Below are positions 9,167 to 48,249 of a stretch of 64,000 nucleotides of DNA, piece after piece; position 1 is the stretch's first letter, and each line of letters begins with the position of its first letter. The notes beneath the pieces were generated by a model. That model did not search any database and was not told the DNA's origin. It worked only from the letters and a program-made list of their open reading frames with translations. Source of the stretch: Pelomyxa schiedti (lineage: Eukaryota > Protista > Evosea); contig JAHLWZ010000518.1 in assembly GCA_020536535.1 (NCBI GenBank), forward strand, positions 1 through 64,000, in the 5' to 3' direction. A program made the translations under genes and the position numbers.

Positions 9167-10135
9167 CTACTCGTAGAGGTGATTTTGTGCCATGTACGTG
9201 ATTACGGAATCAGGAACAAGGTATTTGACAGACTTGTGGTCATGTACGAGGTTCCTGTTTAATAATGAGAATGAAATAAGCTCTTGTTAAACAACCTGAC
9301 AGTAGTGGAGCTAAGGTCATTGACATGGGAAGCGGGAATGATATGCACACGGTCCTTTTTTTTGGTGATTAATTTAATGATGAGACGTGTATTGCGTACC
9401 ATATGTGGCATCAAAACGGGGTATGTAGCAAAACGGGAAGTATCGGTGCCTGGTCTTTCAACACATACTACACCGTACTGAGAGAGAATTTCTTCCATCT
9501 AAAATAATAAGGCTTTGAATTAACAAATTCACATCTTACTTGTTCCGGAATCCAACACCCTGGTTTATTAAATGAATCCAGTAAGTCTGCTCCACACACC
9601 AAAAGTGGAATAACCTCTGCCAAAAAAAGTTACGAAGTAGAACCAAATAATGATTTACCTGCGCCAAGTTTCTCAGTCATTAATTGTCTGTAATGCCTGA
9701 GAACGATGAGGGTTCGTGTATAAGTAGGTTGACTGCATTCCCAGTCCTCTGCAGTCCAGTCGGAACTGGCAACAGCGAGCTTTTTATCGTATATTAGTTT
9801 CCCAATGAAATCCAGCCAATTAAGATAATACTATGTGTGCCATACGGTGCACATGGCAAGTCGCTGAGCAGAAGGCAACAGACCAGACTTGGAGTATTTG
9901 TCATTGGCTGGTGATACGCAGCCTCCCACCACATTGGCACCCAAAGAAACACAGTAATCTCTCACGGTTTCTGGATGATAATGAAGACATAAGTAAGTCA
10001 CGCTACCCAAGGGGAAAAAAGAAAGACGACGGAGGCACCTAAGTTACGAAGATGGATGTAGTGAATGGGATTGAAAGATCCGCATTGAACCAGGTACACG
10101 TTCTTCGGCATGACTTTAGTAACGGCACTGGCCAT
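9167..10135 (-). CDS. NMNAT: Nicotinamide/nicotinate mononucleotide adenylyltransferase
   Basis: Motifs 'CGSFNPIHYIH', 'SPANDKYSK', 'CGADLLDSFNKPGCW', 'YGVVCVERPG', 'NDLSSTTVR' and 'SVKYLVPDSVITY' across several exons. Confidence 0.95.
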
Positions 10136-10280
10136 TTCTTTGGTTTCTTTGTTTTCGAGAAGAGACCTTGTCAAGTTCCAAGCCAAAAAAAAATTGATTG
10201 CCCTGCTCTCGATCTCTCGTGTCAAACGAACGAAAACACAACAAAAAAACAAAATAAACCAAAGGCGAGAGGGAGGTCCA

Positions 10281-13200
10281 ATGGCCGCAGCGGTGGCGGA
10301 CCATCAAAGGAAGAGATTGTACTATCGCGAGGAGATTGTTGAAGTTGAAGAGGACAAGGAACACGAGTGCGTATAATACACGCCCCCACACAATGCGCCT
10401 CGCCACGTCAAAGGCGGGTACCACCGCTTATCACAACTGCTTACTGGTGTGGTGAAACAAAAAGATTCAAAGCGGCCAACAACACAGAAGACCCAACGAC
10501 TTACATCAAATCCATTGCCGTGGTATTTCCTTCCCCTACTGGTGTTTGATGTTTACACGCCAAGAAATACTTGAATGCCTTCTTGAATGCAAACGGCGGA
10601 ACCATTTACTTTGGTGTGAATGATGATGGCAAAGCCGTTGGCGTTATCCTTGATCGCGCAGCAAGGGACAACATCAGACTTAGTATTGACTCTGCAGTCT
10701 CCCGTAATACTCGCAGAATCTTCTCTTATTAATGACTAATATGCCAAGATTTTTCCCCTGAAGTGGACCCTGATATGTACTCTATTGCTTTTATTCCTGT
10801 TGTAGAAAGACCCTCCCAAGGTTACCGAAATTTTGAACGACCTACTCATTGACACTCTACTTCCAAGACCCCAGTTCTGTTCCCGAAAAGTCCCTAGCTC
10901 CTGCTACAGATACATATATTGTAGAGATGACCATACATCGTGGTCGTGCTTCTGTTTACACTGATGGAGTTGGAAAAGTATTTTGCCCTCTCTGACAATT
11001 CACACCTTGGGAAACGAAACATAGAACGCCAAAGCATATGTAAGAAGAGAGGGAAGTATTACAGAACTAAGCCCTCGCAGCATTGATGACAGGCGGTCCA
11101 TGGGGCGACCTGTATTCTCCTGTATGCTTTACCACTATTGGATGTAATTCACAAAAATATCTAGACTCCGTCACAAATCCTGCAACCCAAGTAGTTGGAA
11201 GGGAACATGAAATGAATATAATATCTTCCTTCATTTCAGCTGCACCACAAGGTAAAGCGAGTCGATTGATAAAATTCAAGCTCCAGTTAAAGAAAAGCAG
11301 GCATCCCTATTGTTGTGTCAATATTTGGTCTTCCATATGTTGGGAAATCGACCGTGGCACAGCACATTGCTCGAACATTTAAATATAAATTCCCGGATTT
11401 CACTTGCCATATCAATATGAAAGGATTCTCCACCTCTTTTATTAGTGTACCTCCCATCAAATTGTAATTTTTAATATTAATGTATTGAAACCACAGGTTA
11501 CAGAAGCCATGGCAGGTGTTTATCGAGTTCTACACCCAAATGCACCTACTCCATCAAATTCCACGGAGGCAGCTGCACTTTTTCAATGTATTTTCCCATT
11601 TATATCACAGTGGCTCTTATGGTTCCCATAGCTTGCTTTGTCAATAAGAAGTGCATATTATTTGTTGAAAACGTGGGCACTGTAGACCAAGTCAAGGCAC
11701 TTGTACCAACAAATTCCGCAGCTTGTGTGATCATTGTGACTTCACGCAAAGACCTTGGATTAGATGCCTCACTTGGTCTGTACTTTCTACTTCCAATTGA
11801 TGTTAATAACTCTGACACCTTTAAGACAACTGTTACAGCCTACAGGTCAAACTTGGTGCACTTCAATTGACTGATGCAGCTGCTTTATTGAGATCTCTCG
11901 TCAAAAGTGTCTCACTCTCTCAGCCGGATGCAGAAAAACTCGCAAGTGTGGCCTGTTGCATGCCACAGCTTATTCGAATTTTGGCCTGTGAGGTGAATGC
12001 CAAGCACAACCCAAATGTCACTGAAGTCATCGAGCAACTTGCTTTGAAAGGTGGAATATCTTCATTAGTTTCTGAATGTCTGGGGAATGTTGTTGCCCGA
12101 GAAGAAACAGCTCGTTATGTTCTACCTCTTGTAGTTTTCAGAGGTTCCTTTCTCTCATCCCCCTTAATTATCCCTGTTGATCATGTCTATTTTTAGGGTC
12201 GTTTGATGCCTCTGCTGCATGTTCTGTTCTTAATGAAGAGTATACTGCAGTTCATAAAATTCTACAGTCTCTACTGGAGTACTCCTTGTTAGATTTTGAC
12301 CCTGTCAGTGTGCGCTATTTTCAGTGTGAAGCTGTGAGGTCACATGCATTGCAGCAATTAAAGAATTGTCCTGGCGAACTGAAAGTTTGGACTGAAAGGT
12401 AATTGTTCTATATCCACCAAAAGAAGCATTCACAAGGAGGGAAAAACAACAAAAGATTTATCAAGCATTATTTGCGTATCTTGGCGCATATTGAAAATCT
12501 TGTTCTGATGGTAACACCAGATGATGGGCTCAATACCTCAAATCTCTCCAGTGCACACCGCCAAAACATGATGGAAGCAACCACCCTTTTGGCAAAGGAG
12601 GAAAGGAACATGGAGACGATGTTACAGTATTGTAGAGACCTATGCCTAGGATCAGAAGTGGCTAGGATTGTCTTCATAATGTCATCACCCAAAGTCCTGG
12701 CAGCGATGGCAGTATATTCAGCTGAGCGATGGAGAGGTCTTGTTCAACTCTTTGATCAGAGACCCAAAAGCAGTCTAAGTGTTAGCTCTCCAGCCAAACC
12801 AAGTCAAAAGCGAGCTGGAGAACTGGAAAAGAAGCACAAGCATAGACACAAGCACAAACACAAAGAGGGTGAAAAAAAGAAAAAATCAAAAAAAAAAGAC
12901 AAGGGGGAAAAGAGGAAAAGAAAAGCTGAGCCTGAGGATGCAAAGCCAGATGCAGTGGGGGAAACTACTGCAAAATCTAGCACTGAGAAACCTGATGACC
13001 CTGAGCCTGTAACTTCGGAAGTACAAAATACAGGGGAACCAAAGAGCACGGCAACGCAAACAACCACTACCCAGATCACCAGCAAAGATGCACCCGCCTC
13101 TCAAACAAGTGGCACTGACAAAAAAAGTGCAAAACGACGAAAAGATCCTCTGAAGATAAAAAAGACAATTCTGTCTCTCATTGTAAGGGAAAGCAAGAAG

Positions 13201-14697
13201 CGGAAAATTGATGGCATGAATTCTAAAAGAAAAGAATCAGGTGCCTCTACCACTGCAGAAGCAGAGCCAACAGAAAACATAACAACAAATATTGATAGCA
13301 CAGAGCCTGCTAACCAAAAAATTCCACCAGCTGTGCCAGGGAGTCCCAAGTGCACAGCTACTGAACAACCTGATGATATCAACTCCAGCAAAATCATTGA
13401 CTCCACAGCTACCTTCACTACTTCAAAGACAAAGCTTAAGTACAGTAAGAAACTGAAAAAAACACCTGAGACTGCACCACCCTCACAGGATAACGGATCA
13501 ACTAATACACCAATTGAACCGCCAACATCAGACAATATTATTCGTGAATCAACCAAAGCAACTTCCGAGCCAAACAAACCCATGGCTGAACCTATCAAAC
13601 CCGCTCCCCAACCAATCCAACGCACTCCTGAAGCAACTAAACCTGTTACACCAGAAAAATCCTCCGTAGGCCGGGGAACACCGAGAGCTTCCCTTCTGAC
13701 ACCAAATCCTTCTGACAGTGTAAGTCCCAGAGGAAGAGGGAGAGGGAGAGGAACTAGAGGTGGCAGAGGGGCTGGAATGGTGGGGAGAGGTGCTGGAATG
13801 GTAGGGAGAGGTGTTAGTATGGTTCCCTCTTCACCTACCCCACCCCCAAATGTTGACCCAATATCCGCTGTTTTAAGTTCCCTGGCAGCATGGAATGTCG
13901 AAAAAACCTCTAAACCCAATGACAAGTCTGTATCTCAATCTGACACTAACACTCCAACTCCGCACCCAAGAAAACCAACTCCAGTTTTGCCAGTTTCCCC
14001 AAAACCTAAAACCACACCAACCACACCAACACGCGCTACACTCCCTCATAACACATCCCCTGAACCTCCTCCACCTCAAGGCAGCCACACTTTATCTGAT
14101 TCCCTACCCTCCGAGGAATCTGGACAAGCCGAACCAGAGAAAGCAGAAAAAAGGTGTGAAGAGCCGAGAACAGATATGAAGGCAAAAAAAGGGGGGAAAA
14201 ATCTGGAAGCAAAAACCACCGAAGCGGAGCAGGATTGCGTATCACGAAAGCCCGAGACCCACTCAAGGAAAGAAGATTCAGACACAGAAACAGAAACAGA
14301 AAGCACGACCGCAAGCAACCTCCACGGCGACAAGATTACCGCAACAAAGGAAACTCCAAGTAAAGAGAACCAAGAAGGAAAATCCAAAACAAAAGTGGCA
14401 AGTACCAAGAAATCTAAATCCACACAACCTTCCACCAAAAGCAAACCCTTGAGAACCACAAAAGAAAAACATAAGAGGAAATCAGCCAAAGAGAGCGATC
14501 AAGAGAAGGATGAGGGAGCCAAACCAAAAGCTGCTAAAGGAAAACGTTCCACTTCCAAACCGGATACAAAACACGCCAAACCACCCAATCCCAAGAAGAA
14601 GAGAACACAAGTATCATCCTCTACAATCACTGAAGAACCTGAAGTCAATGCCCCTAGCAACAATACTTCTGATGCTGAACAAGATGGCTCTTCTTAG
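10281..14697 (+). CDS. Schlafen (AlbA_2, SLFNL1-like) domain + NB-ARC/STAND P-loop NTPase + ~700-aa basic disordered tail (NLR-like)
   Basis: Introns 10367-10464, 10523-10564 and 10704-10748 give 'EEDKEHEFK...KYLNAFLNANGGTIYFGVNDDG...FSPEVDPDMYSIAFIPV...AYVRREGS'. This is followed by 'VVGREHE', Walker A 'GLPYVGKST' (~11327-11353), Walker B 'ILFVENV', sensor-1 'VIIVTSR', GxP-like 'CCMPQLI', winged-helix 'SLLEYSLL' and MHD-position 'RYFQCEAVR'. Confidence 0.85.
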
Positions 14698-14964
14698 GGT
14701 ACTCCGTTTTTTTTGCAACCCACAACTTCGTTTCTCGACTCCGCAATAACCAAATAACAGATGGAGAGCATCAGGCCTCCGCACAGGGATGAACACTAGC
14801 CAAATCAGACATCTAAGCCACTTATTGTGGTTTCTTTGAGTGACGTTATCGAGAAGGGTAAAGTCTGAGTCCATTTTTTGTTTTGTTCAAAAGCCACTAT
14901 TTTCTCTTTACCCGTGGCAACACAGGCTAGAAACAAAAAAAAAACCATTCGTCTACTGCTTTTT

Positions 14965-32200: not shown

Positions 32201-35200
32201 TTCCAGGCAAAACCTTCCGAAACAGTGAGCACAACAAATTCTGGTGTGCGGTTCTTCAGTGAAGACCACCGAACCCTATTCCAACTGTTCACTCCATTAT
32301 GCTGTCTACAATCAACTGAAACGCGGTAAATATCTTGAGACTGTGTAAGAAAAGGGAGGGAAAATGGTAGTAATGAAAAAAAAAGGGACCAATTCTACTT
32401 GCTCATAGAAGCGTTTGTGGGAGCTTCAAACCAGCTCGCTAACAGTGATAATTTGGCTCTTTCTGCCAGATTTGAAATATCTTCAGAAATCCATGTAGGC
32501 TATTCCTTATGCAGGTTCCCCTATCTAATCCATTTCATCTAAGTTGGATTTTGATGACCACTTGGCTACCACTTTATTGTCCCTCTTTCCATCAATCCTC
32601 CACAAGGAGTACTTCGATCCTTTATCTGCATCACTGTTACAAGCAATCGCCATGGTAAAAACAAGTCTAAACAAGCTCTGGATTTATTTTCTCTAGTTCC
32701 ATTTCCCCCAACGCCTGCCTGCCGTAATTCATGCTCTGTTTTCAGCACCCAAGAGCAATGTCACTGACATGGTTTTGGCCCATATAGATTGGGATAAAAT
32801 TGATCTTCAAAGTGCTTCCGATTTAATCGCACAACTTTCATTGTCATTGTCAAGTCCAACTCAATCAGCCAATGACACCCTTGTTAATGTTGCAAGGTAC
32901 CTATCAGTTTTATTATTTATTGTGACCTTCACAAGAAAGATATTTACTTCAAAAGTCTATATGGAAGCCATTTCAAGCAGTGTTTCTCATGGAATATCCG
33001 CCTCTAATGTGACTGGAAGTTTTCCGGGGGTCACTGAAGTGATGCAATTCATCCAAAATTGCCTGACCTCAAAATCGATGGTACAACTTCATAAGAAAAA
33101 AAAAAAAGTCACCAAGCCCAGGCGACCACGGGAGTTGTACAGAGCATTACCTCGCTCTTGCAGTCTGTTTTCTGTGGGGCTCCTGCTCTGCTTCAATGTT
33201 TTTGGCAATTCCTCTACAGTGTTGTTATTCCCTCTTTGAGTGGAACCTCGGCAGGTAGCAACTTAATTCTCCTTCCGTGGGGTCACTTCCCCTACTAGAT
33301 CAGACACAACCATGGATTTGCCTTATCCGGAATATTCCAGCAGAGCTGTGGTCTAAAGTAGGTTCACAAACTGGATCTTTTAACTTTTTTCCGTTTTTGA
33401 GGAAGTAAAAGGTTTCCTTCCATCATAAAGAAGAAGTCATATCTCAGATGATTGATCTTCTCTTTATCAATCCAGTAGTGTCCTGGCTCTTTTCGTATCC
33501 TACTGACATTAGAACAGGACTACGCAAGGATTGTTATTGAACTGTTTGCCACTCTTGATTGGGAATTATTCCTCTCATCCCTTCCATTTGCCCCAGCTCA
33601 AGTAGCAAAGGAGGCACCGCATCCACCTGTCATTCTTTTGGGTTCGTTTGCGTGCTTGTCTTCAAGTTAATTTTCTGCAGAACAACTTTTTGGCGGGACA
33701 GGCCATCAATCAACAACCCTGTCTTCTGCAGCTTCCAACACTGCACCACTCATTCACCTAGACGAGCTCCCTCCCACCTCATCAACCTCCACATCAGCCT
33801 TTATGACAACTTCAACAAATCCAACAACTCCGGTTGACGTTACTCCTTCTGCATTTATGCCCTCTTCAACAGCAACTCAACCTTCGGTGGCACAAACATC
33901 TTTAATAGACATTTCTACTTCTGAAACTCAACCCACACATACCACAACCTCAGCAGCACTTACCCAAACTACCACAGTGAACACAACTCCGAGTTCAGCA
34001 CCAGCGGGCGCCTATCACAATGAATCCAAATTACTTCTAGCATTCCTCAAGCTTTTTATTAGCGTGTATCTGCTTCATGTGTGTACCTTCATCTTTATTG
34101 ATTAATAGCTGGAAGTAATTATGCAATAGCCAGATGCCATTTCCAAACAGCTTATCCTTAAATTATGCAATCCACGCAAAAATGGACGGCTGGTGGAATG
34201 GTGGCGTGTAGAAATGGACTCCTTCTCATCATTTTTTGACTCTTCACTTCTGCTTCGATTAGTGAAAGGTAATGGGTTTTCCTATCTTTGTTAGTGATGT
34301 CTCGCACTTATCTATGTAGCGCCTACTATGCTTAAAGACCCATCTGGAGGCATTGTGGATATGGCTAAACTGCTTCATGATGTTGCAGTTGAGTCGAGAT
34401 CCCCATATGTTGTGTGCACAGCGGTACAAGAAGCCAGAAATGTCATGTTTCTCCTTTTGAAGAGCACTTTCAACCAAAGTTTTCCCCACAGAAGATATTT
34501 CACATGTAACAAAATAAATAAGAAATGTGGAACCTTGGTTTGGCGGATCATACAGGGCTAATGCGTGACGTAATGCTTCCTCTTGTCAGATTCCTGGGCA
34601 CACTTGCTCATCTACCCCAATCACAACCAATTTTCCCCAAGGTTTTCCCTTATGTAGGGCACTATTCTGTTTTTGATTATTGGTTTGTTTTTGAAACAGG
34701 TATTACAGTCTATACTCTCTTGTCTTGAAATCCCCTTATCTGAACCAATTCTGGCTCCTGCACCTTTTGCCAAATCCGAGGTATGATTTCCTGGTTTTTT
34801 TTTGAAATAACAAGCTGCAGACGGGTGAGTTATGCCCTGGGCCTCCATTACAGACATTGGAAAAGAAATTATCTGGACTGATACTTCAGTTTTGTGCATC
34901 ATGTACACCAGAAACAGCTTTGCAGATTCTATCTTCAGGCGCTGAGTGTGTGGTGGGTTTAAGCACTTTGGTGACTCTACTGGAGGAGACCTTGCGGTCA
35001 TATTTCACCCAGAGCGAATCTGAAAATGCCGTAAATACTGCTGCTACTGCATTCAGACCACCTCCCGTGTCCTTAGATGGCTTTGCCCTGGTTTTCCCAA
35101 TTTGTTTTATTCTGACCTTATAAGTTTCGTCAATTAGGCGTGCAGTGACAATCATACTGCGTTAACTCTGTATATATATCTCGATCAACAACGCAGGGGT

Positions 35201-35959
35201 GGGCTTATTTGGCCTCATCTCTGTGTACTTGCCGAAAAAGTTCTTGCTTCCACGCACCATACGTATTGACTAAGATGACTAGGTCATTTCGTTTTGCCCC
35301 AGTTTAAACCATGAAGTCGACATGCTCGCTTTATGGTTTCTCATTCTTGGCATTGTAGCAGACGATCAATGGATTAATGATAAAAATTCTGATGCTGTTG
35401 TACGTCCCTCTCCACTACATTCCCTTCTTGTTTACTTCACCCAAGTTGCAATCTTTGCATCGGCATCTACAGTCGTGGGCCACTGGGAAACCAGTGAGCT
35501 TGCCATCTTTGTTCAAGACTTTGTCCTCTTCCAGTAAACCTTCAACAGCATTCACCACCAATCCCCGCATCCAGGTAAAAAAAACACAAGTACTTCAGTC
35601 ACTACTAACATTGCCTAGCTTGCTGCCCGCTCTTGTAGAGTATATCTGGCAAGGATTTACACTCACAAAACAAAAGATGACCCAAAGTATACACCAGAGG
35701 TAACAACCCCTACCACCCATTTTCAATACCCACTGATACATTCTACCAACAGTCCGGAGCTCTTGAGCGAGCTGCGGCCGAGCTGGAGTCACTACGCAAT
35801 CAACTTCTTGCCCTTCGTGATGACCCTTCATACCGCGACCTTAGACCCTTCTTTGATGACATGGAAAACATATGTTCACCATTGTGCACCATGTTTGACT
35901 TCAAGTCCTCTGTAGCAAAGCATCTTTGTCCCACAGCACCTTATCTGGCCCACCTATAA
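26217..35959 (+). CDS. EPG5: EPG5-like autophagosome-lysosome tether (very large, many exons)
   Basis: Spliced 'MWTVTTEHRTASGVCGCGHTVSHTYHYNWTSVNETV' resembles EPG5 as I recall it ('[34 protein letters not shown]'). C-terminus 'LCPTAPYLAHL*' resembles 'LYPEVHYLDHI'. Size fits; N-terminus is Pro/Gln-rich. Not every exon was resolved. Confidence 0.72.
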
Positions 35960-36104
35960 CCCCGCCTCCTGTTATAGAGACAAGTAGTGTTGTAGAAGCA
36001 AAATAAAAGCCAAAAAATACTGAAAAAGCATTTCTTTTTCTTTACGTGGCTGCTTGTTCTTCCTTGGGGTGTATTAGGTGTGATGAGCATAACATAAGTA
36101 AAAT

Positions 36105-37366
36105 TCAATCAACAGAAGCAAGTGGTGCCAAGAAGATTTCTATGCCGCCTATGTCGTCTCCCAAATCTCTTCCCACAGGTGAATATGAAAAACGGTACTG
36201 GTGAAGAAACACACAGGGAAATAGACAGAGGTGCATCGTCACCAAGTTGGATAAGGCATTCTTTCACTTCAGCAACCTTGCAGAAATTCAGTTACAAGGA
36301 TAAAGACTTCACAACCCAAACTGATATAATTTTGCCAACAGTGGACAGAGATGGGAGCTTGAAATCTCTGGAAACTGGCTTCTTGCAGAGAACATGCACT
36401 TGTCCCCGTGGCTGTGCCAAATAAGTATGTCATTCCCAGAACTGTGGATTTACCTCATCATTTAGCTCCACTTTGGCAGAGAGATTGGCATCACTTGATT
36501 CAAATACAACCGCTGCTGTTGAGAAGGATATTGTAACTTTCTCTGAGAAACCTTTCAGTGCTGAAAAAATCTAAAAAGGTTGAGCTGCATCTAGGTTGCC
36601 ATATCGAACTTCAGTGAACAAAGAGCCAGGAAGAAGAAGACCAGTGTTATGAGTCATATCCGGTACCACGATTCTATCTGCACCTATAAACAATGAAGTA
36701 CGTGCCTTTCTTATACCTTGAATAGCATTAAGCAACACGAGCCGGTAGCTTTTAGTTCTCGACTTCACACTAGAAGTGATTTTCTGATTTTAGGTTTTCA
36801 GTGGGTTGGTGTCTCTCGAATTTGAAGCCACTACCACAACAATGACATCCTGCTGTATGACAAGGGTGACTGCATCCTCAATTTTAACATGTTGTAAACA
36901 CTTTGATAGCATTTCCAGCTTCAAGGCAATTGAAACAGGTTTGGAAGAAGTACTGGAACGTTTAATAAGTTGTAAAGGACCTTCCTAACCATATCAAATT
37001 GATGAAGGAGCTTCGGGGAGCTAGGTGCCACTGTAGAAGAAAGGTCATAGAACCTTTACGAATAAGTCATCTAAACGCAACGAGGGTAGTACCATCGGTG
37101 CTCGAAAAGGAAACACCTAGGGGAAAAAAAAAAGGATACAGTAAACAAAGAATGTGAGATAATGCAGACCTTCACTCGAGAAATCCATGAAAGCAACATC
37201 TACCTAACAGACGGTTTTGTACCACACAACGGCGAAAAAACGTACAAAAGCAGACAAAGAAGTGATCAAACGTGCAAATCTCACAGGCTGCCGCACTCTG
37301 CACTTGGCTCAACAACAAAGGCAAAGAGGACTACCTTCCCGCATACACCAGCTGTACATCCCCCAT
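36105..37366 (-). CDS. Highly divergent PCNA-family sliding clamp (multi-exon, mostly missed by the ORF track)
   Basis: Spliced 'YAGRVRQPVRFARLITSLSAFVDVAFMDFSSEGVSF...PVSIALKLEMLSKCL...LPGSLFTEIFSALKGFSEKVTISFSTAAVVFES...KPVSRDFKLPSL...QLGDDAPLSI...IFLAP' is colinear with PCNA along its whole length. Confidence 0.75.
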
Positions 37367-37533
37367 GCTGTTTAGTTATCGTTCTCCCAGATCTAAGATA
37401 CTTGCAAAAAAACCGCCACACAAGGTGTCAAGCTGTCAAAGTGCCACACCACATTAAGTTTCCCTTTTGAGACAATCCCCAAAACAAGGGACCGACGAAA
37501 AAATCAAACGCAAATCAAATTGAAAAAGGGAAG

Positions 37534-39439
37534 ATGAAGGGTGCCGCTCTGTTGTTGTTAGTGCTTCTGTGTGTTGTGTCAGCATTGAAGACTCCGGCCC
37601 CACACGCAAAGGGATGGTTCCATTTCCCTCAGTATTTCAACAGAATGCACAAGCCCGTATGCCCGCCTTTTTTTTTTTTTTCTTTCTCACTAAGTGCCAA
37701 AAAAAAGCTGCGTGATGTGGAACCTCAATGGTTCGATCAGAAGCAAGACCACTTTGATCCTACAAATAAAGGTGATTAGAGAAGAGCAAAAGGTAAAAAA
37801 ATGAGTTACTTACTCTTTGATAGTTACGTGGAAACAGTTGTACTACGTCAATGACGAGTGGTTTGACGGCACAGGCCCTGTTTTCTTTTACTTCAATGGG
37901 GAGGGTCCACTCAGCCCAAGTGCTGTGACATCTGACTAGTAAGTTTTTTTTTTTTTTTGCATGGCCTAATCGCAATTCGCCCCTTCTTCTGTGTAGTTTC
38001 GTAACAGAACTCGCTCACCGCTATGGCGCCCTTCTTGTCAGCCACGAGCATCGTTATTACGGACAGTCATTCCCTGTCCCTGTGAGCCCTTGGTCCATGG
38101 CAGTCAAGTATTTTTTACATGCTATCAGGATCTTTCGACTGCGAATATGAAGTACTTGACTGTCGAACAGGCACTGGAAGATGCTGCCTACTTCCAGGAG
38201 TGGATGATGGATACATGGAATCTTACTACCAACCCTTGGGTTATAACTGGTGGCAGTTATTCTGGGTTCTTGGCCACAGCGTATGTTCTTCGTCGATGGG
38301 GTAATCGTTCTCATAGTGTTTAGTTACCGCGTTCGGTATCCCCACCTTGTTATGGCAGCATATTCTTCCTCTGGGGTTGTTCTCCCAATTGTCGATTACT
38401 ACCAGTACTTCGAGGTTGTTGACCAAGACTTCTCTTGGTATCCCAATTGCTACACGGCAATGCTCAACATAAGTGCCGAAATATCCGCAGTAAGCGTGCA
38501 AATACACTCACTAGCGGTTGTAACATTCAACAGATTTGGAATAGCGGTCCCTCTGGCCTTGCCACCCTTACGGACATGTTTGCCCTTTGTGAACCACTTG
38601 TTCCAGCTGATGAAGTTGACTTCTGGGAAACAATCATTGTAAAGCTCCTACTCCTTTGGCGAGTTTAACCTTCTTCACAGTCTCCATCGGCCGGTGGTGC
38701 TCAGTACGGTTATACTAAAGACGTTTGTGCTGTGGTCCTTGGTGCACCAACCCCACTTCAGGGCTGGGCCTTGTTCTTCAAACAAGCTGGTGCTAAGTTC
38801 GCTGGCATCGACTGGGCAACAGTATTCTTAACATTTGTATTACAATGCATTTTAATCCCAACACAGAGCTGCAATAATATTCATTGGACTGATGAGGGGT
38901 CTAACATAACCATTACTAAGCCCTACACTGGCTGGAGGACATGGGTATGGCAAACTTGCATCGAATTCGGTTGGTTCCAAACAACTACTACAAGTCAGAT
39001 GTGGCCCCACGTGGTAAGTTTAATAGTTTTCAAGTTTTCCACAATTAATTTTATTTAAAAAGATCGATTTGCAGTACAACTTGGATGGATGCGACGTTCT
39101 GTTCGGCCCAGGATTCTACCCAGATACTGAGCAAATTATTACTGACTATGGCGGCTTACATCCTGAAAGCGACCAAATTGTCTCATGTGCCGGCCTTGCC
39201 GACCCATGGCACCCTGCTTGCCAGCTTTCCACTTACAAGGTACTCCGAGTCATTCAACAAGTATAGAACAAGCTAACAAATTTCCGCAGGACACCGAACC
39301 AGTCTATTTCATCCAAGGACACGATGCATCCCACTGCAAAGACATGGATGCACCCTCTGACAAGGACTCACCTGAAATGACTGAAGCTCGTGCTGGAGTT
39401 CAGTACTGGCTCGACACTTGGCTCAACTACAAAGCCTAA
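37534..39439 (+). CDS. Secreted/lysosomal serine carboxypeptidase, family S28
   Basis: Signal peptide, 'WFDQKQDHFDP', 'GEGP', 'EHRYYGQS', nucleophile 'GGSYSG', 'WQTCIEFGWFQT', 'DPWH', 'HCKDM'. Confidence 0.93.
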
Positions 39440-45700: not shown

Positions 45701-48249
45701 AGGGTGAGCCTGATAGTAAGTCTCGGACCAGCTGTGAGACTGAGGAACCTTCTGAACGCCACAAAGTAGAAGAGACAGTGATGGAGGAAGTAGAGTGTCC
45801 TGAATTGCATTCTACCACATCCGAACACCTCAAGGTACATGGAGCGATTGGCCCGAAATCCACATCTTCATCTGCATACCACACCTCGGTGGCACATGAT
45901 ACCTCACCACCCCCAACTTCGGGTTCTCCCGAAATCCCTTTTACAAATTCACCTGAACCGCCACCTCTCGATGCATACCTCCCCGATGTTGTACACACAC
46001 CTCCATCTCCCTCTCCACCGGTCCCTTCTCCCCCAACACACGGCAGGCAACACTTGGGAAAGCACTCCCAGTCACGATCACCACGGTCCTCTCCAAAGAA
46101 ACGGAAGTCCCCACATCTTCGAGCACAAAAGTCGGAAAGCATTGCAAGTCCTCCCGAAGGAGAAACTTTGTCTCCCGAACCCCCTGTCAATAGCGATGCC
46201 TCCCCCTCCCCTGCCATGAAACATCAACCTAGTGAACCTCTACTGGACGCCTCTGTGGAAAATGTAAAGAAAGCAGTCAGTAAAGAGAAGATACCAGTAG
46301 TTCTCACTGGTGCCGATAAGAACAATGGCGATGGAGAGGGTATCCTTGACGAACCTATTGTTGATGCAGAAATAGCGGAAATCGAGAATGCGAAGCAAGA
46401 ACAACAATCTTGTATGAAAATGATAGATAAAAATGACCACCAAAATAATGCTTGTTTTCAAGGTGGACCAAACACGGGACATGTCGGCCTCAAAACTCGA
46501 GACCACAGTAACCACCGACACCACACCACAGGTGGCCGATCCTCTCGTGGTTCACGGGGTCGGGTTGTTCCCAGTTAAACACCATTGGATCCGCTAACCA
46601 TTATGTAATGCAGAAATCATCAGAAGACATATTGGTCTCAGTGGCTCTTCACAAATGCAAAGAAATTCTGCAGGAGATGATGGAACAGCCAGAGTGCATG
46701 CCTTTCAATCAGCCAGTTGATCCCGAGAAACTAAACATCCCTGACTACTTCGATTTAATCAAAGAGCCGATGGATTTCGGAACAATCATGGTTTACTGTT
46801 CTTCCTTTTAATACCTTTTATAATTTATTTTCCTTTATGGTGAAGGCACATCTCAATCGTCGAGCATTTTCTTCACCAGGAGAGTTTGCAACCCACATGC
46901 ACCTGGTGTTTTCAAATGCAATGACATACAATCCACCAGGTCATCCTATCCACACAGTTGCCCAGGCTCTAAAGACCTCATTTGCAAAACAATTCTCCGC
47001 TTTGGAAGCAGAAATAGAGAAAGGTTTACCATCTTTTCCAGTAAATCTCACCAACAAACACCTAGACCGATCTATGACCCAAACAGATTACGAGAAGGAG
47101 ATAGAACTAATGTTCAAAGCTGTCCAACAGCTGTCCGCAGAAATTTCTACCATTAAACAGACACAAAACACAGAGGAAACACATGAACCAGAGCTTGCTA
47201 ATACGGCAACAGAGAAAGAGAACCTGGAAAATCAGGACGCAGATGGTGGCAGAAACTCTGCTGCTAGGCACACTTCTAATCAAGCAAGTTCCAATGATGT
47301 GGGGTCTTCAAGCGCAATTCATTCTTCTGCTAAGAGTAACTCTACAACGGAAAGGCCAAGTTCTCGACCCTTGTCATCTGAAGAGAAGAGGCAATTGAGT
47401 CGCCAAATAAACAGGCTGTCTGGAGAAAACTTACCCCAGGTTGTCAAGATCATTCAGGATCATATCCCCAGCATGAAGTTGCAAAATACGCTTGCGGAAA
47501 TGGAAATTGATTTGGATGCGCTCGATACAGGTAATTTCCCAATGCCCTTTTATGTTCACCATAACGACTGCCGCACAGACACGCTGCGTGCATTAGAACG
47601 GCATGTCATATCTTCCAAGCCTGGCCACGCACCAGCAAGGCCTGCTTCCCGCAACGCACAGCACGCATCACCCGCAGTTGCTGCAAGAGCAAGTCCTCCC
47701 AATTACCTGAGGGCAATTTTGAACAGTGGCTCACCAGTCATGTTCTTGGTTGTACCGCCGCACCTGCAGCCCACTCAGCACCGGCCAGTGCAGCCACAAC
47801 CAAAGGTGCAACCACAGCAACACCACACACAAGCCCAACCGCAACACCGCCCTTCACAGCCACCCCATGCAGCACATAACCAGCACCCACACCCACACCC
47901 ACAGCAGCAGCAGCAACAACATCAGCACCAACACCAGCACCCCCAGCATCAACAACCCCAGCAGTCACCACACCCACACCCCCACTCACACTCACAACCA
48001 CAACACCACCATCACCAACAGACCCACAGCACTGAAACCACAGCAGGCAGTGGTGTGGCACCCAGCACTAGTGATGCTGTGACAGGCACAGGCACAGGCA
48101 CAGGATCAGGGACAGGGGGGGGAGGGGGAGGGACGGCAGACATTGTAGGAGTAAGTGGCAGTAGCAGCAGTGGTGAGGATGGGTCAAGTTCAGAGTCAAG
48201 TGATTCTGAAAGCGAACCTGACATCCCACCTCATGAGTTTAATGTTTGA
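42720..48249 (+). CDS. BET/GTE-type bromodomain + extra-terminal (ET) domain protein with a long disordered N-terminus
   Basis: Bromodomain '[29 protein letters not shown]...[11 protein letters not shown]' and ET '[16 protein letters not shown]...[10 protein letters not shown]'. Upstream exons splice in frame (e.g. introns 44473-44519 and 44698-44741). Confidence 0.82.

Follow-up and report, generated by a model that had tools for sequence, protein, structure and literature searches.

A Schlafen AlbA_2 domain joined to an NB-ARC module in Pelomyxa schiedti and its relatives: a protist version, hitherto undescribed, of a known effector–switch design

[quoted passage not shown] The encoded protein, KAH3761552.1 of P. 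schiedti (1263 amino acids (aa), hereafter P0001), is listed in GenBank as "SARP family transcriptional regulator". Its GenBank label is wrong; together with its relatives, the protein represents a variant from protists, so far undescribed, of an effector–switch design that is already known. The fusion of the two domains is very probably real, and it recurs in one paralogue, in an orthologue, and among relatives from environmental contigs. As for function, we see about even chances that the AlbA_2 domain is an endoribonuclease under the control of the NB-ARC switch, which would arrest translation as a stress or conflict response; this reading draws on analogy with characterized systems.

Three-frame translation (10200-12800) allowed the reading frame to be traced from the ATG at 10281 to the TAG at 14695-14697 and resulted in a single gene with 13 exons and 1263 codons plus stop. 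All 12 introns are of the GT..AG type and have a length of 42-98 nt. The exon query 11846-12142, searched against 1.8 billion representative proteins, retrieved P0001 with 100% identity, and the exon cores translate to successive stretches of this protein in the same order (residues 1-28, 30-48, 49-94, and onward to 518-1263). Exons were searched singly; for full-length analyses, the database protein P0001 was used. The original prediction had placed the element at 10281-12460. The start was correct, but position 12460 lies at the very beginning of exon 13, and the coding sequence extends to the stop codon. The RNA data originated from three single-cell runs of one study, in which 32-38% of the sampled words of window positions 9900-14900 were present. 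The RNA contigs over the gene span 11931-14900. They bear out introns 11 and 12, the only coding introns confirmed in this way, as well as exon 13, which is unbroken (12452-14697 without a joint). The region 10234-11930, with exons 1-10, is uncovered in all three runs, and the joints from the Schlafen part to the P-loop therefore rest on gene prediction and conservation.

The N-terminus of P0001 is a complete Schlafen AlbA_2 domain, a predicted nuclease with an intact acidic triad. The Pfam family SLFN_AlbA_2 (PF04326) matched residues 24-169, which form a single lobe, at 5.3e-15 (56.4 bits, cut-off 25.3) and near its full length (profile positions 1-116 of 118). When Pfam was searched exon by exon, exon 3 was the sole diagnostic exon and matched SLFN_AlbA_2 by itself at 7e-9, over the gathering score. 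Using phmmer against the PDB, P0001 retrieved the catalytic lobes of a Slfn13-type protein (5yd0), SLFN11, SLFN12, SLFN5, and SLFN14. A profile of 12 family members matched the Slfn13-type structure at 4e-16, the catalytic lobes of Slfn13/14/12 at 1e-15 to 1e-16, and the tRNase domain of SAMD9 at 1e-8. The AlphaFold2 (AF2) model of the domain was built on the family alignment and had a predicted local distance difference test score (pLDDT) of 85. In Foldseek, the best 30 matches of this model were all SLFN or SAMD9 nuclease domains (prob 1.00), headed by SLFN12/5/13/11/14 and the SAMD9 tRNase domain, the latter with the highest template modeling score (TM-score, 0.71). E24, E29, and D68 align with E-x4-E-FK and GVDD of the 5yd0 chain, whose acidic positions we take to be the catalytic carboxylates of SLFN11/13, and are invariant in 12 of 12 subfamily members.

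The second module belongs to the STAND NTPases, in their NB-ARC clade, and its Walker B and MHD motifs are atypical throughout the family. NB-ARC (PF00931) was the best P-loop family in Pfam for P0001 (3e-4, 20.5 bits), under the cut-off of 23.5 bits, which was exceeded by the Mastigamoeba balamuthi orthologue (P0006) with 28.3 bits. The P-loop exon alone gave only weak generic Pfam matches that do not settle the NTPase class, and the NB-ARC model did not match the raw P. schiedti genome, the exons being too short for the model. In NCBIfam, partial matches only were found (AfsR, HaaT, and FxSxx TPR proteins). Among solved structures, AfsR was the nearest sequence relative (PDB phmmer, 7.8e-11 over residues 166-483), and the family profile was aligned with a bacterial SARP-NB-ARC-TPR protein over columns 190-562 (hhalign 99.7%, E 3e-25). 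Residues 200-600 were modeled by AF2 with a pLDDT of 85-95, and Foldseek with the NB-ARC model retrieved Apaf-1, NRC3, RPP1, Roq1, and CED-4 (E 1e-9 to 4e-12, prob 1.00). The Walker B motif is hhhhE(N/D) in all family members instead of the canonical hhhhD(D/E); E308 and N309 are invariant in four aligned members, and the paralogue has ED there. At the MHD position, QCE, QCD, QSD, or MND was found across the relatives, i.e., the His is lost and an acidic residue is kept. Here, hhalign pairs RYFQCEAVR with the bacterial RYQFHDLIR.

Most of what had been read from the sequence alone agrees with these results. All motifs quoted in the original prediction are present, namely E-x4-EFK (E24...E29-F-K), AFLNANGGTIYFGVNDD, YVRREGS, VGRE, GLPYVGKST, ILFVENV, VTSR, CMPQLIRI, and QCE. 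The proposed in-frame union of a complete Schlafen/AlbA_2 domain with a STAND module in one gene is corroborated by the exon mapping onto P0001, the Pfam match of 5.3e-15, and the fold matches. Likewise, the retention of the Schlafen acidic residues is reflected in the invariance of the triad, and the assignment to the STAND/NB-ARC class is backed by AfsR, the hhalign result, and the Apaf-1/NLR fold (NLR, nucleotide-binding leucine-rich repeat receptor). The unusual Walker B (E) and MHD (QCE) motifs, reported for the single protein, turned out to be traits of the whole family. The expectation of AlbA_2 and NB-ARC matches was borne out for AlbA_2, which lies above the cut-off, and for both folds, but the NB-ARC match of P0001 itself fell short (20.5 vs. 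23.5 bits).

The search for proteins of like architecture was successful in P. schiedti itself, in M. balamuthi, and in environmental contigs. The whole P. schiedti genome contains exactly two AlbA_2 matches, one in the window gene and one in a paralogue on contig C957; in both cases, an NB-ARC paralogue follows a few hundred bases downstream. By eye, the first three exon boundaries of the C957 paralogue seem to match those of the window gene. In M. balamuthi, to which the identifier prefix of m51a1_g1172 belongs (PMC8136499), this 660-aa protein is 39% identical and has both AlbA_2 and NB-ARC above the Pfam cut-offs. Intron-bearing environmental contigs (L020/L021/L024, L025, and L028) display the identical order of AlbA_2 followed by NB-ARC, and in L024 a stop-free single frame connects RRAGS, at the C-terminus of AlbA_2, with the P-loop GLPVVGKS. 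A wrong gene model, in which adjacent AlbA_2 and NB-ARC genes were merged, would be compatible with the gap in the RNA contigs and with the fact that the public model is a prediction. We regard such an error as very improbable, because exons 6 and 7 are parted by a GT..AG intron of merely 43 nt, because the paralogue, M. balamuthi, and no fewer than three environmental eukaryotes have the same order and spacing, and because one relative holds both parts in a single open frame.

Table 1. Positions of gene parts, motifs, and related loci (window coordinates unless a contig is named)
Feature	Position	Strand	Remarks
Exons 1-6	10281-10366, 10465-10522, 10565-10703, 10749-10820, 10868-10977, 11025-11121	+	AlbA_2 part, residues 1-188
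Exons 7-12	11165-11251, 11301-11446, 11497-11587, 11632-11775, 11826-12143, 12197-12398	+	NB-ARC part, residues ~189-517
Exon 13	to stop 14695-14697	+	residues 518-1263
Intron 10	donor 11776, acceptor 11825	+	public model, backed by homology with P0002
Intron 11	12144-12196	+	53 nt; one RNA contig
Intron 12	12399-12455	+	57 nt; RNA contigs of two runs
Intron in the 3' untranslated region	14699-14760	+	62 nt, GT..AG; starts 2 nt past the stop codon; one RNA contig
E24 codon	10350-10352	+	equivalent to the first catalytic Glu of SLFN nucleases (5yd0 alignment)
E29 codon, split	10365-10366 plus 10465	+	second E of E-x4-E-FK
D68 codon	10622-10624	+	GVN-D-D; equivalent to the Asp of the SLFN GVDD motif
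NB-ARC module	11165-12398	+	residues ~189-517; nucleotide-binding domain (NBD), helical ARC1, winged-helix ARC2
Walker A / P-loop GLPYVGKST	11327-11353	+	residues 226-234; conserved
Walker B ILFVEN	11655-11672	+	residues 304-309; E308 replaces the usual NB-ARC Asp
RNBS-B / sensor-1 VTSR	11736-11747	+	residues 331-334; T332 and S333 invariant, R334 nearly
GLPL-equivalent CMPQLIRI	11957-11980	+	residues 388-395; P390 invariant, including versus bacterial LPLAIRI
MHD-equivalent QCE	12322-12330	+	residues 492-494, winged helix; Cys in place of His
Helical cap past the winged helix	12346-12765	+	residues ~500-620, five helices (AF2 ~508-617)
Disordered tail	12766-14694	+	~640 aa; K 15%, T 13%, S 12%, P 11%
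RGG box	13729-13812	+	residues 942-969
Schlafen-NB-ARC paralogue (L003)	G000:C957 ~34900-38150	-	Walker B IED, MHD position QSD, S/T/P-rich tail
CSD-AlbA_2-TerB-like proteins (CSD, cold-shock domain)	L013:3698-4894; L011:2225-3394; L012, L014, L016, L017		acidic triad intact
UBA + CSD + AlbA_2	L018:1541-3358		eukaryotic-looking metagenome contig
CSD-like N-terminus + AlbA_2	L015:3-959		eukaryotic-looking metagenome contig
AlbA_2 protein with zinc-finger-like N-terminus and TerB-like C-terminus	L019		termini by eye, AlbA_2 by Pfam

The architecture had been taken to be unknown in eukaryotes. This did not hold, as animal SAMD9/9L proteins already pair AlbA_2 with STAND, and so do bacterial Avs9 and bNACHT34. 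The animal proteins are arranged as SAM-AlbA_2-SIR2-STAND-TPR-OB; their AlbA_2 domain is a tRNase, and SAMD9 function needs its acidic active site (PMC12680541). In Avs9, the effector is an AlbA_2 domain, the acidic site of which is required for cell killing (PMC12680541), and bNACHT34 carries a Schlafen RNase at its N-terminus (preprint 10.1101/2022.07.19.500537). The survey of 2025 (PMC12680541) reported that plants, fungi, algae, and protozoa yielded no analogues. The full-text literature gave nothing relevant on Mastigamoeba with NB-ARC or on AlbA_2 with NB-ARC, and neither of the Archamoebae genome papers mentions NB-ARC or Schlafen.

Like SAMD9/9L, the Pelomyxa protein places one AlbA_2 nuclease domain N-terminal to a STAND NTPase in a single eukaryotic protein, and the tRNase domain of SAMD9 is its best structural match by TM-score (0.69-0.71). 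In contrast to SAMD9/9L, SAM, SIR2, TPR, and OB domains were not detected in P0001, of which only the AlbA_2 part matches SAMD9 chains; the NTPase belongs to the NB-ARC (AfsR-like) clade, the C-terminal tail is disordered, and the AlbA_2 sequence resembles the SLFN catalytic lobe (1e-16) more than SAMD9 (1e-8). With Avs9 and bNACHT34, compared by their published descriptions, it shares the order of effector and switch and an effector predicted to act on oligomerization. It differs from them in being eukaryotic and intron-bearing and in having no TPR or other sensor, and its nearest AlbA_2 relatives are CSD-AlbA_2-TerB-like and not Avs-type proteins. The animal Schlafens SLFN5/11/12/13/14 have the same AlbA_2 fold and, in their C-lobe, the same E...E...D active site; they possess a two-lobed N-terminal core and, in the long forms, a superfamily 1 (SF1) helicase, whereas in Pelomyxa one lobe is followed by NB-ARC and no helicase family was matched in P0001.

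The homology to AfsR and other SARP-NB-ARC-TPR proteins covers NBD, ARC1, ARC2, and the following linker, but the Pelomyxa protein is devoid of the TPR array, has E instead of D in Walker B, and has lost the MHD His. The GenBank name can be attributed to this similarity of the NB-ARC module. As a description of the protein, the SARP label was rejected: neither PF03704 (SARP/BTAD) nor PF00486 (Trans_reg_C) was found in P0001, and the bacterial proteins P0008-P0014 carry them. With Apaf-1, CED-4, and plant NLRs, the protein shares the fold of the nucleotide-binding switch, but not a CARD, TIR, or coiled-coil (CC) effector or a WD40 or leucine-rich repeat (LRR) sensor; its sequence likeness to plant NLRs is marginal (PDB phmmer, NRC4 0.04, Roq1 0.2). 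The Archamoebae family departs from the precedents in four respects: the NTPase clade, the AlbA_2 lineage, the absence of a repeat sensor, and the altered Walker B/MHD.

Past the winged helix, the AF2 model consists of five helices followed by disorder. The helical cap is homologous to the linker ahead of the TPR array in the bacterial relatives (hhalign to column 562). Residues 640-1263 are of low complexity and include the basic clusters KKKK and KRKRK. The C-termini of the relatives are likewise low-complexity tails, the composition of which is different.

By analogy with Apaf-1/NLR, SAMD9/9L, Avs9, and the dimeric SLFN nucleases, the N-terminal single-lobe AlbA_2 domain would be a metal-dependent endoribonuclease controlled by the NB-ARC (STAND) nucleotide switch. 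Nucleotide-dependent opening and oligomerization of NB-ARC would gather the AlbA_2 domains, and the assembled nuclease would cut tRNA or rRNA, upon which translation would stop. Such a response might be directed to stress or conflict, for example, an intracellular invader or a virus. As a repeat sensor is absent, the target of the trigger would have to be either the helical cap or the long disordered tail with its RGG box and many lysines, unless the signal comes through a partner protein. This mechanism is supported by the precedents SAMD9, Avs9, and bNACHT34, in which cell killing or tRNA cleavage is exerted by an AlbA_2 domain coupled to a STAND module. That the Pelomyxa protein has an immune or conflict role is suggested by the same analogy and by the location of the paralogue, which lies ~2.5 kb from the sole TerD match in the genome (C957:31916-32368).

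Several observations, apart from the RNA gap over exons 1-10, weigh against a gated translation-arrest effector. Pfam did not detect TPR, LRR, or WD40 repeats in residues 480-1263, and there are two paralogues only in place of an enlarged receptor repertoire. The PADLOC 2.0 models, which predate Avs9, gave no family at E <= 0.01 with P0001:1-640 or P0006. A defense island in the window was considered and rejected, as ten neighboring open frames resulted in a bromodomain/BET match and two sub-threshold leucine-zipper matches (JIP_LZII, HALZ). The open frames next to the bacterial AlbA_2 relative L013 are ordinary-looking by eye. Finally, the loss of the MHD His and the Walker B Glu are family-wide, and the NB-ARC module may therefore not cycle classically. 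These two traits, the missing sensor repeats, the low copy number, and the expression in ordinary single-cell transcriptomes would also fit a housekeeping or stress RNase, in which NB-ARC has decayed to a constitutive oligomerization scaffold that lacks ligand gating and an immune role. We consider this quite unlikely, since conservation extends to Walker A, the sensor-1 Arg, the GLPL proline, and the acidic residue of MHD, which argues that nucleotide binding is retained, and since a cell would pay a high price for a tRNase without regulation.

Alternatively, the protein might be a nucleic-acid-binding regulator instead of a killing nuclease and exert a nuclear, nucleotide-gated control of transcription or RNA metabolism similar to AfsR. 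This transcription activator is the nearest solved relative of the NTPase module, the AlbA_2 structures of SLFN5 and SAMD9 were solved as DNA/RNA binders according to the structure titles, and the tail combines basic clusters resembling nuclear localization signals with an RGG box. The ordinary neighborhood of L013 and the nucleic-acid-binding CSD domains of these bacterial relatives point in the same direction. Such a role appears unlikely, given that the acidic triad, which is required for catalysis alone, does not vary from bacteria to eukaryotes in the AlbA_2 subfamily and that P0001 contains no SARP/BTAD or other dedicated DNA-binding domain.

With regard to its origin, the gene has the appearance of a chimera, composed of two modules of bacterial type, as judged from the nearest relatives of each part. 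In pattern scans, the nearest bacterial AlbA_2 domains were 40-42% identical and came from metagenome-assembled genomes (MAGs) of KSB1 and Calditrichaceae; this is nearly the level of the M. balamuthi orthologue (45%). The KSB1/Calditrichota relatives comprise ~400 aa and consist of a CSD, AlbA_2, and a TerB/DUF533-like domain; this family is apparently uncharacterized. A CSD-AlbA_2-TerB-like protein was present in 7 of the 101 genomes related to one such MAG with at least 225 bits, and other AlbA_2 proteins scored at most 65 bits, a gap which indicates that the AlbA_2 subfamily is sharply delimited. Metagenome contigs contribute further members of this subfamily that look eukaryotic and combine AlbA_2 with other partners, among them UBA and CSD (L018) and a CSD-like N-terminus (L015). 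The NB-ARC part is nearest to actinobacterial AfsR/SARP-type NB-ARC-TPR proteins. A bacterial protein in which both modules are of these lineages did not turn up; AlbA_2 and NB-ARC do occur together in an ESM Atlas cluster of 840-aa proteins from bacteria, which is a lead only. In the AlbA_2 tree (12 rows), both NB-ARC-fused Archamoebae proteins group with two putative eukaryotic CSD fusions, with weak support (84/95 and 81/83, zero starred branches), and no direction of transfer was concluded. In plasmids, tblastn matched the NB-ARC part only, for the most part in Streptomyces, and AlbA_2 had no match. A viral origin was rejected, as scans with the AlbA_2 and family profiles found no relatives in viral contigs.

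Taken to its most specific form, the effector reading would make the family a third, independently assembled Schlafen-RNase/STAND receptor, next to those of metazoans (SAMD9/9L) and bacteria (Avs9/bNACHT34), in Archamoebae and related uncultured eukaryotes, in which a bacterial-type CSD-associated AlbA_2 and an AfsR-type NB-ARC form a sensor-less, tail-regulated translation-shutdown immune effector. We put this forward tentatively, as a possibility that we hold with less than even confidence.

The surroundings of the gene in the window are as follows. The divergent neighbor gene at 9468-10252 (-) is expressed and contains an RNA-confirmed intron of 68 nt (9971-10038). Its first exon reads ...CGSFNPIHYIHL... 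and recalls NMNAT-type nucleotidyltransferases by eye; Pfam gave no match with this exon alone. An open frame at 46837-48249, with the terminal part of a bromodomain plus a BET extra-terminal domain (Pfam 4.8e-15), encodes an ordinary chromatin reader that is unrelated to the Schlafen-NB-ARC gene. Scanning the window for Rfam families and tRNAs yielded no matches.

The assignment of P0001 corrects the misleading public annotation as a "SARP family transcriptional regulator". The functional core is compact (~620 aa), and the 660-aa orthologue in M. balamuthi, a species that is kept in laboratory culture, would make functional tests feasible. The control of a Schlafen-type RNase by a STAND switch is a design with experimental backing, antiviral in mammals (SAMD9/9L) and cell-killing in bacteria (Avs9). 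The Archamoebae family fills the protozoan gap left by the earlier survey (PMC12680541) with another NTPase clade and another AlbA_2 lineage, and these differences support a repeated, convergent assembly of the effector–switch pair.

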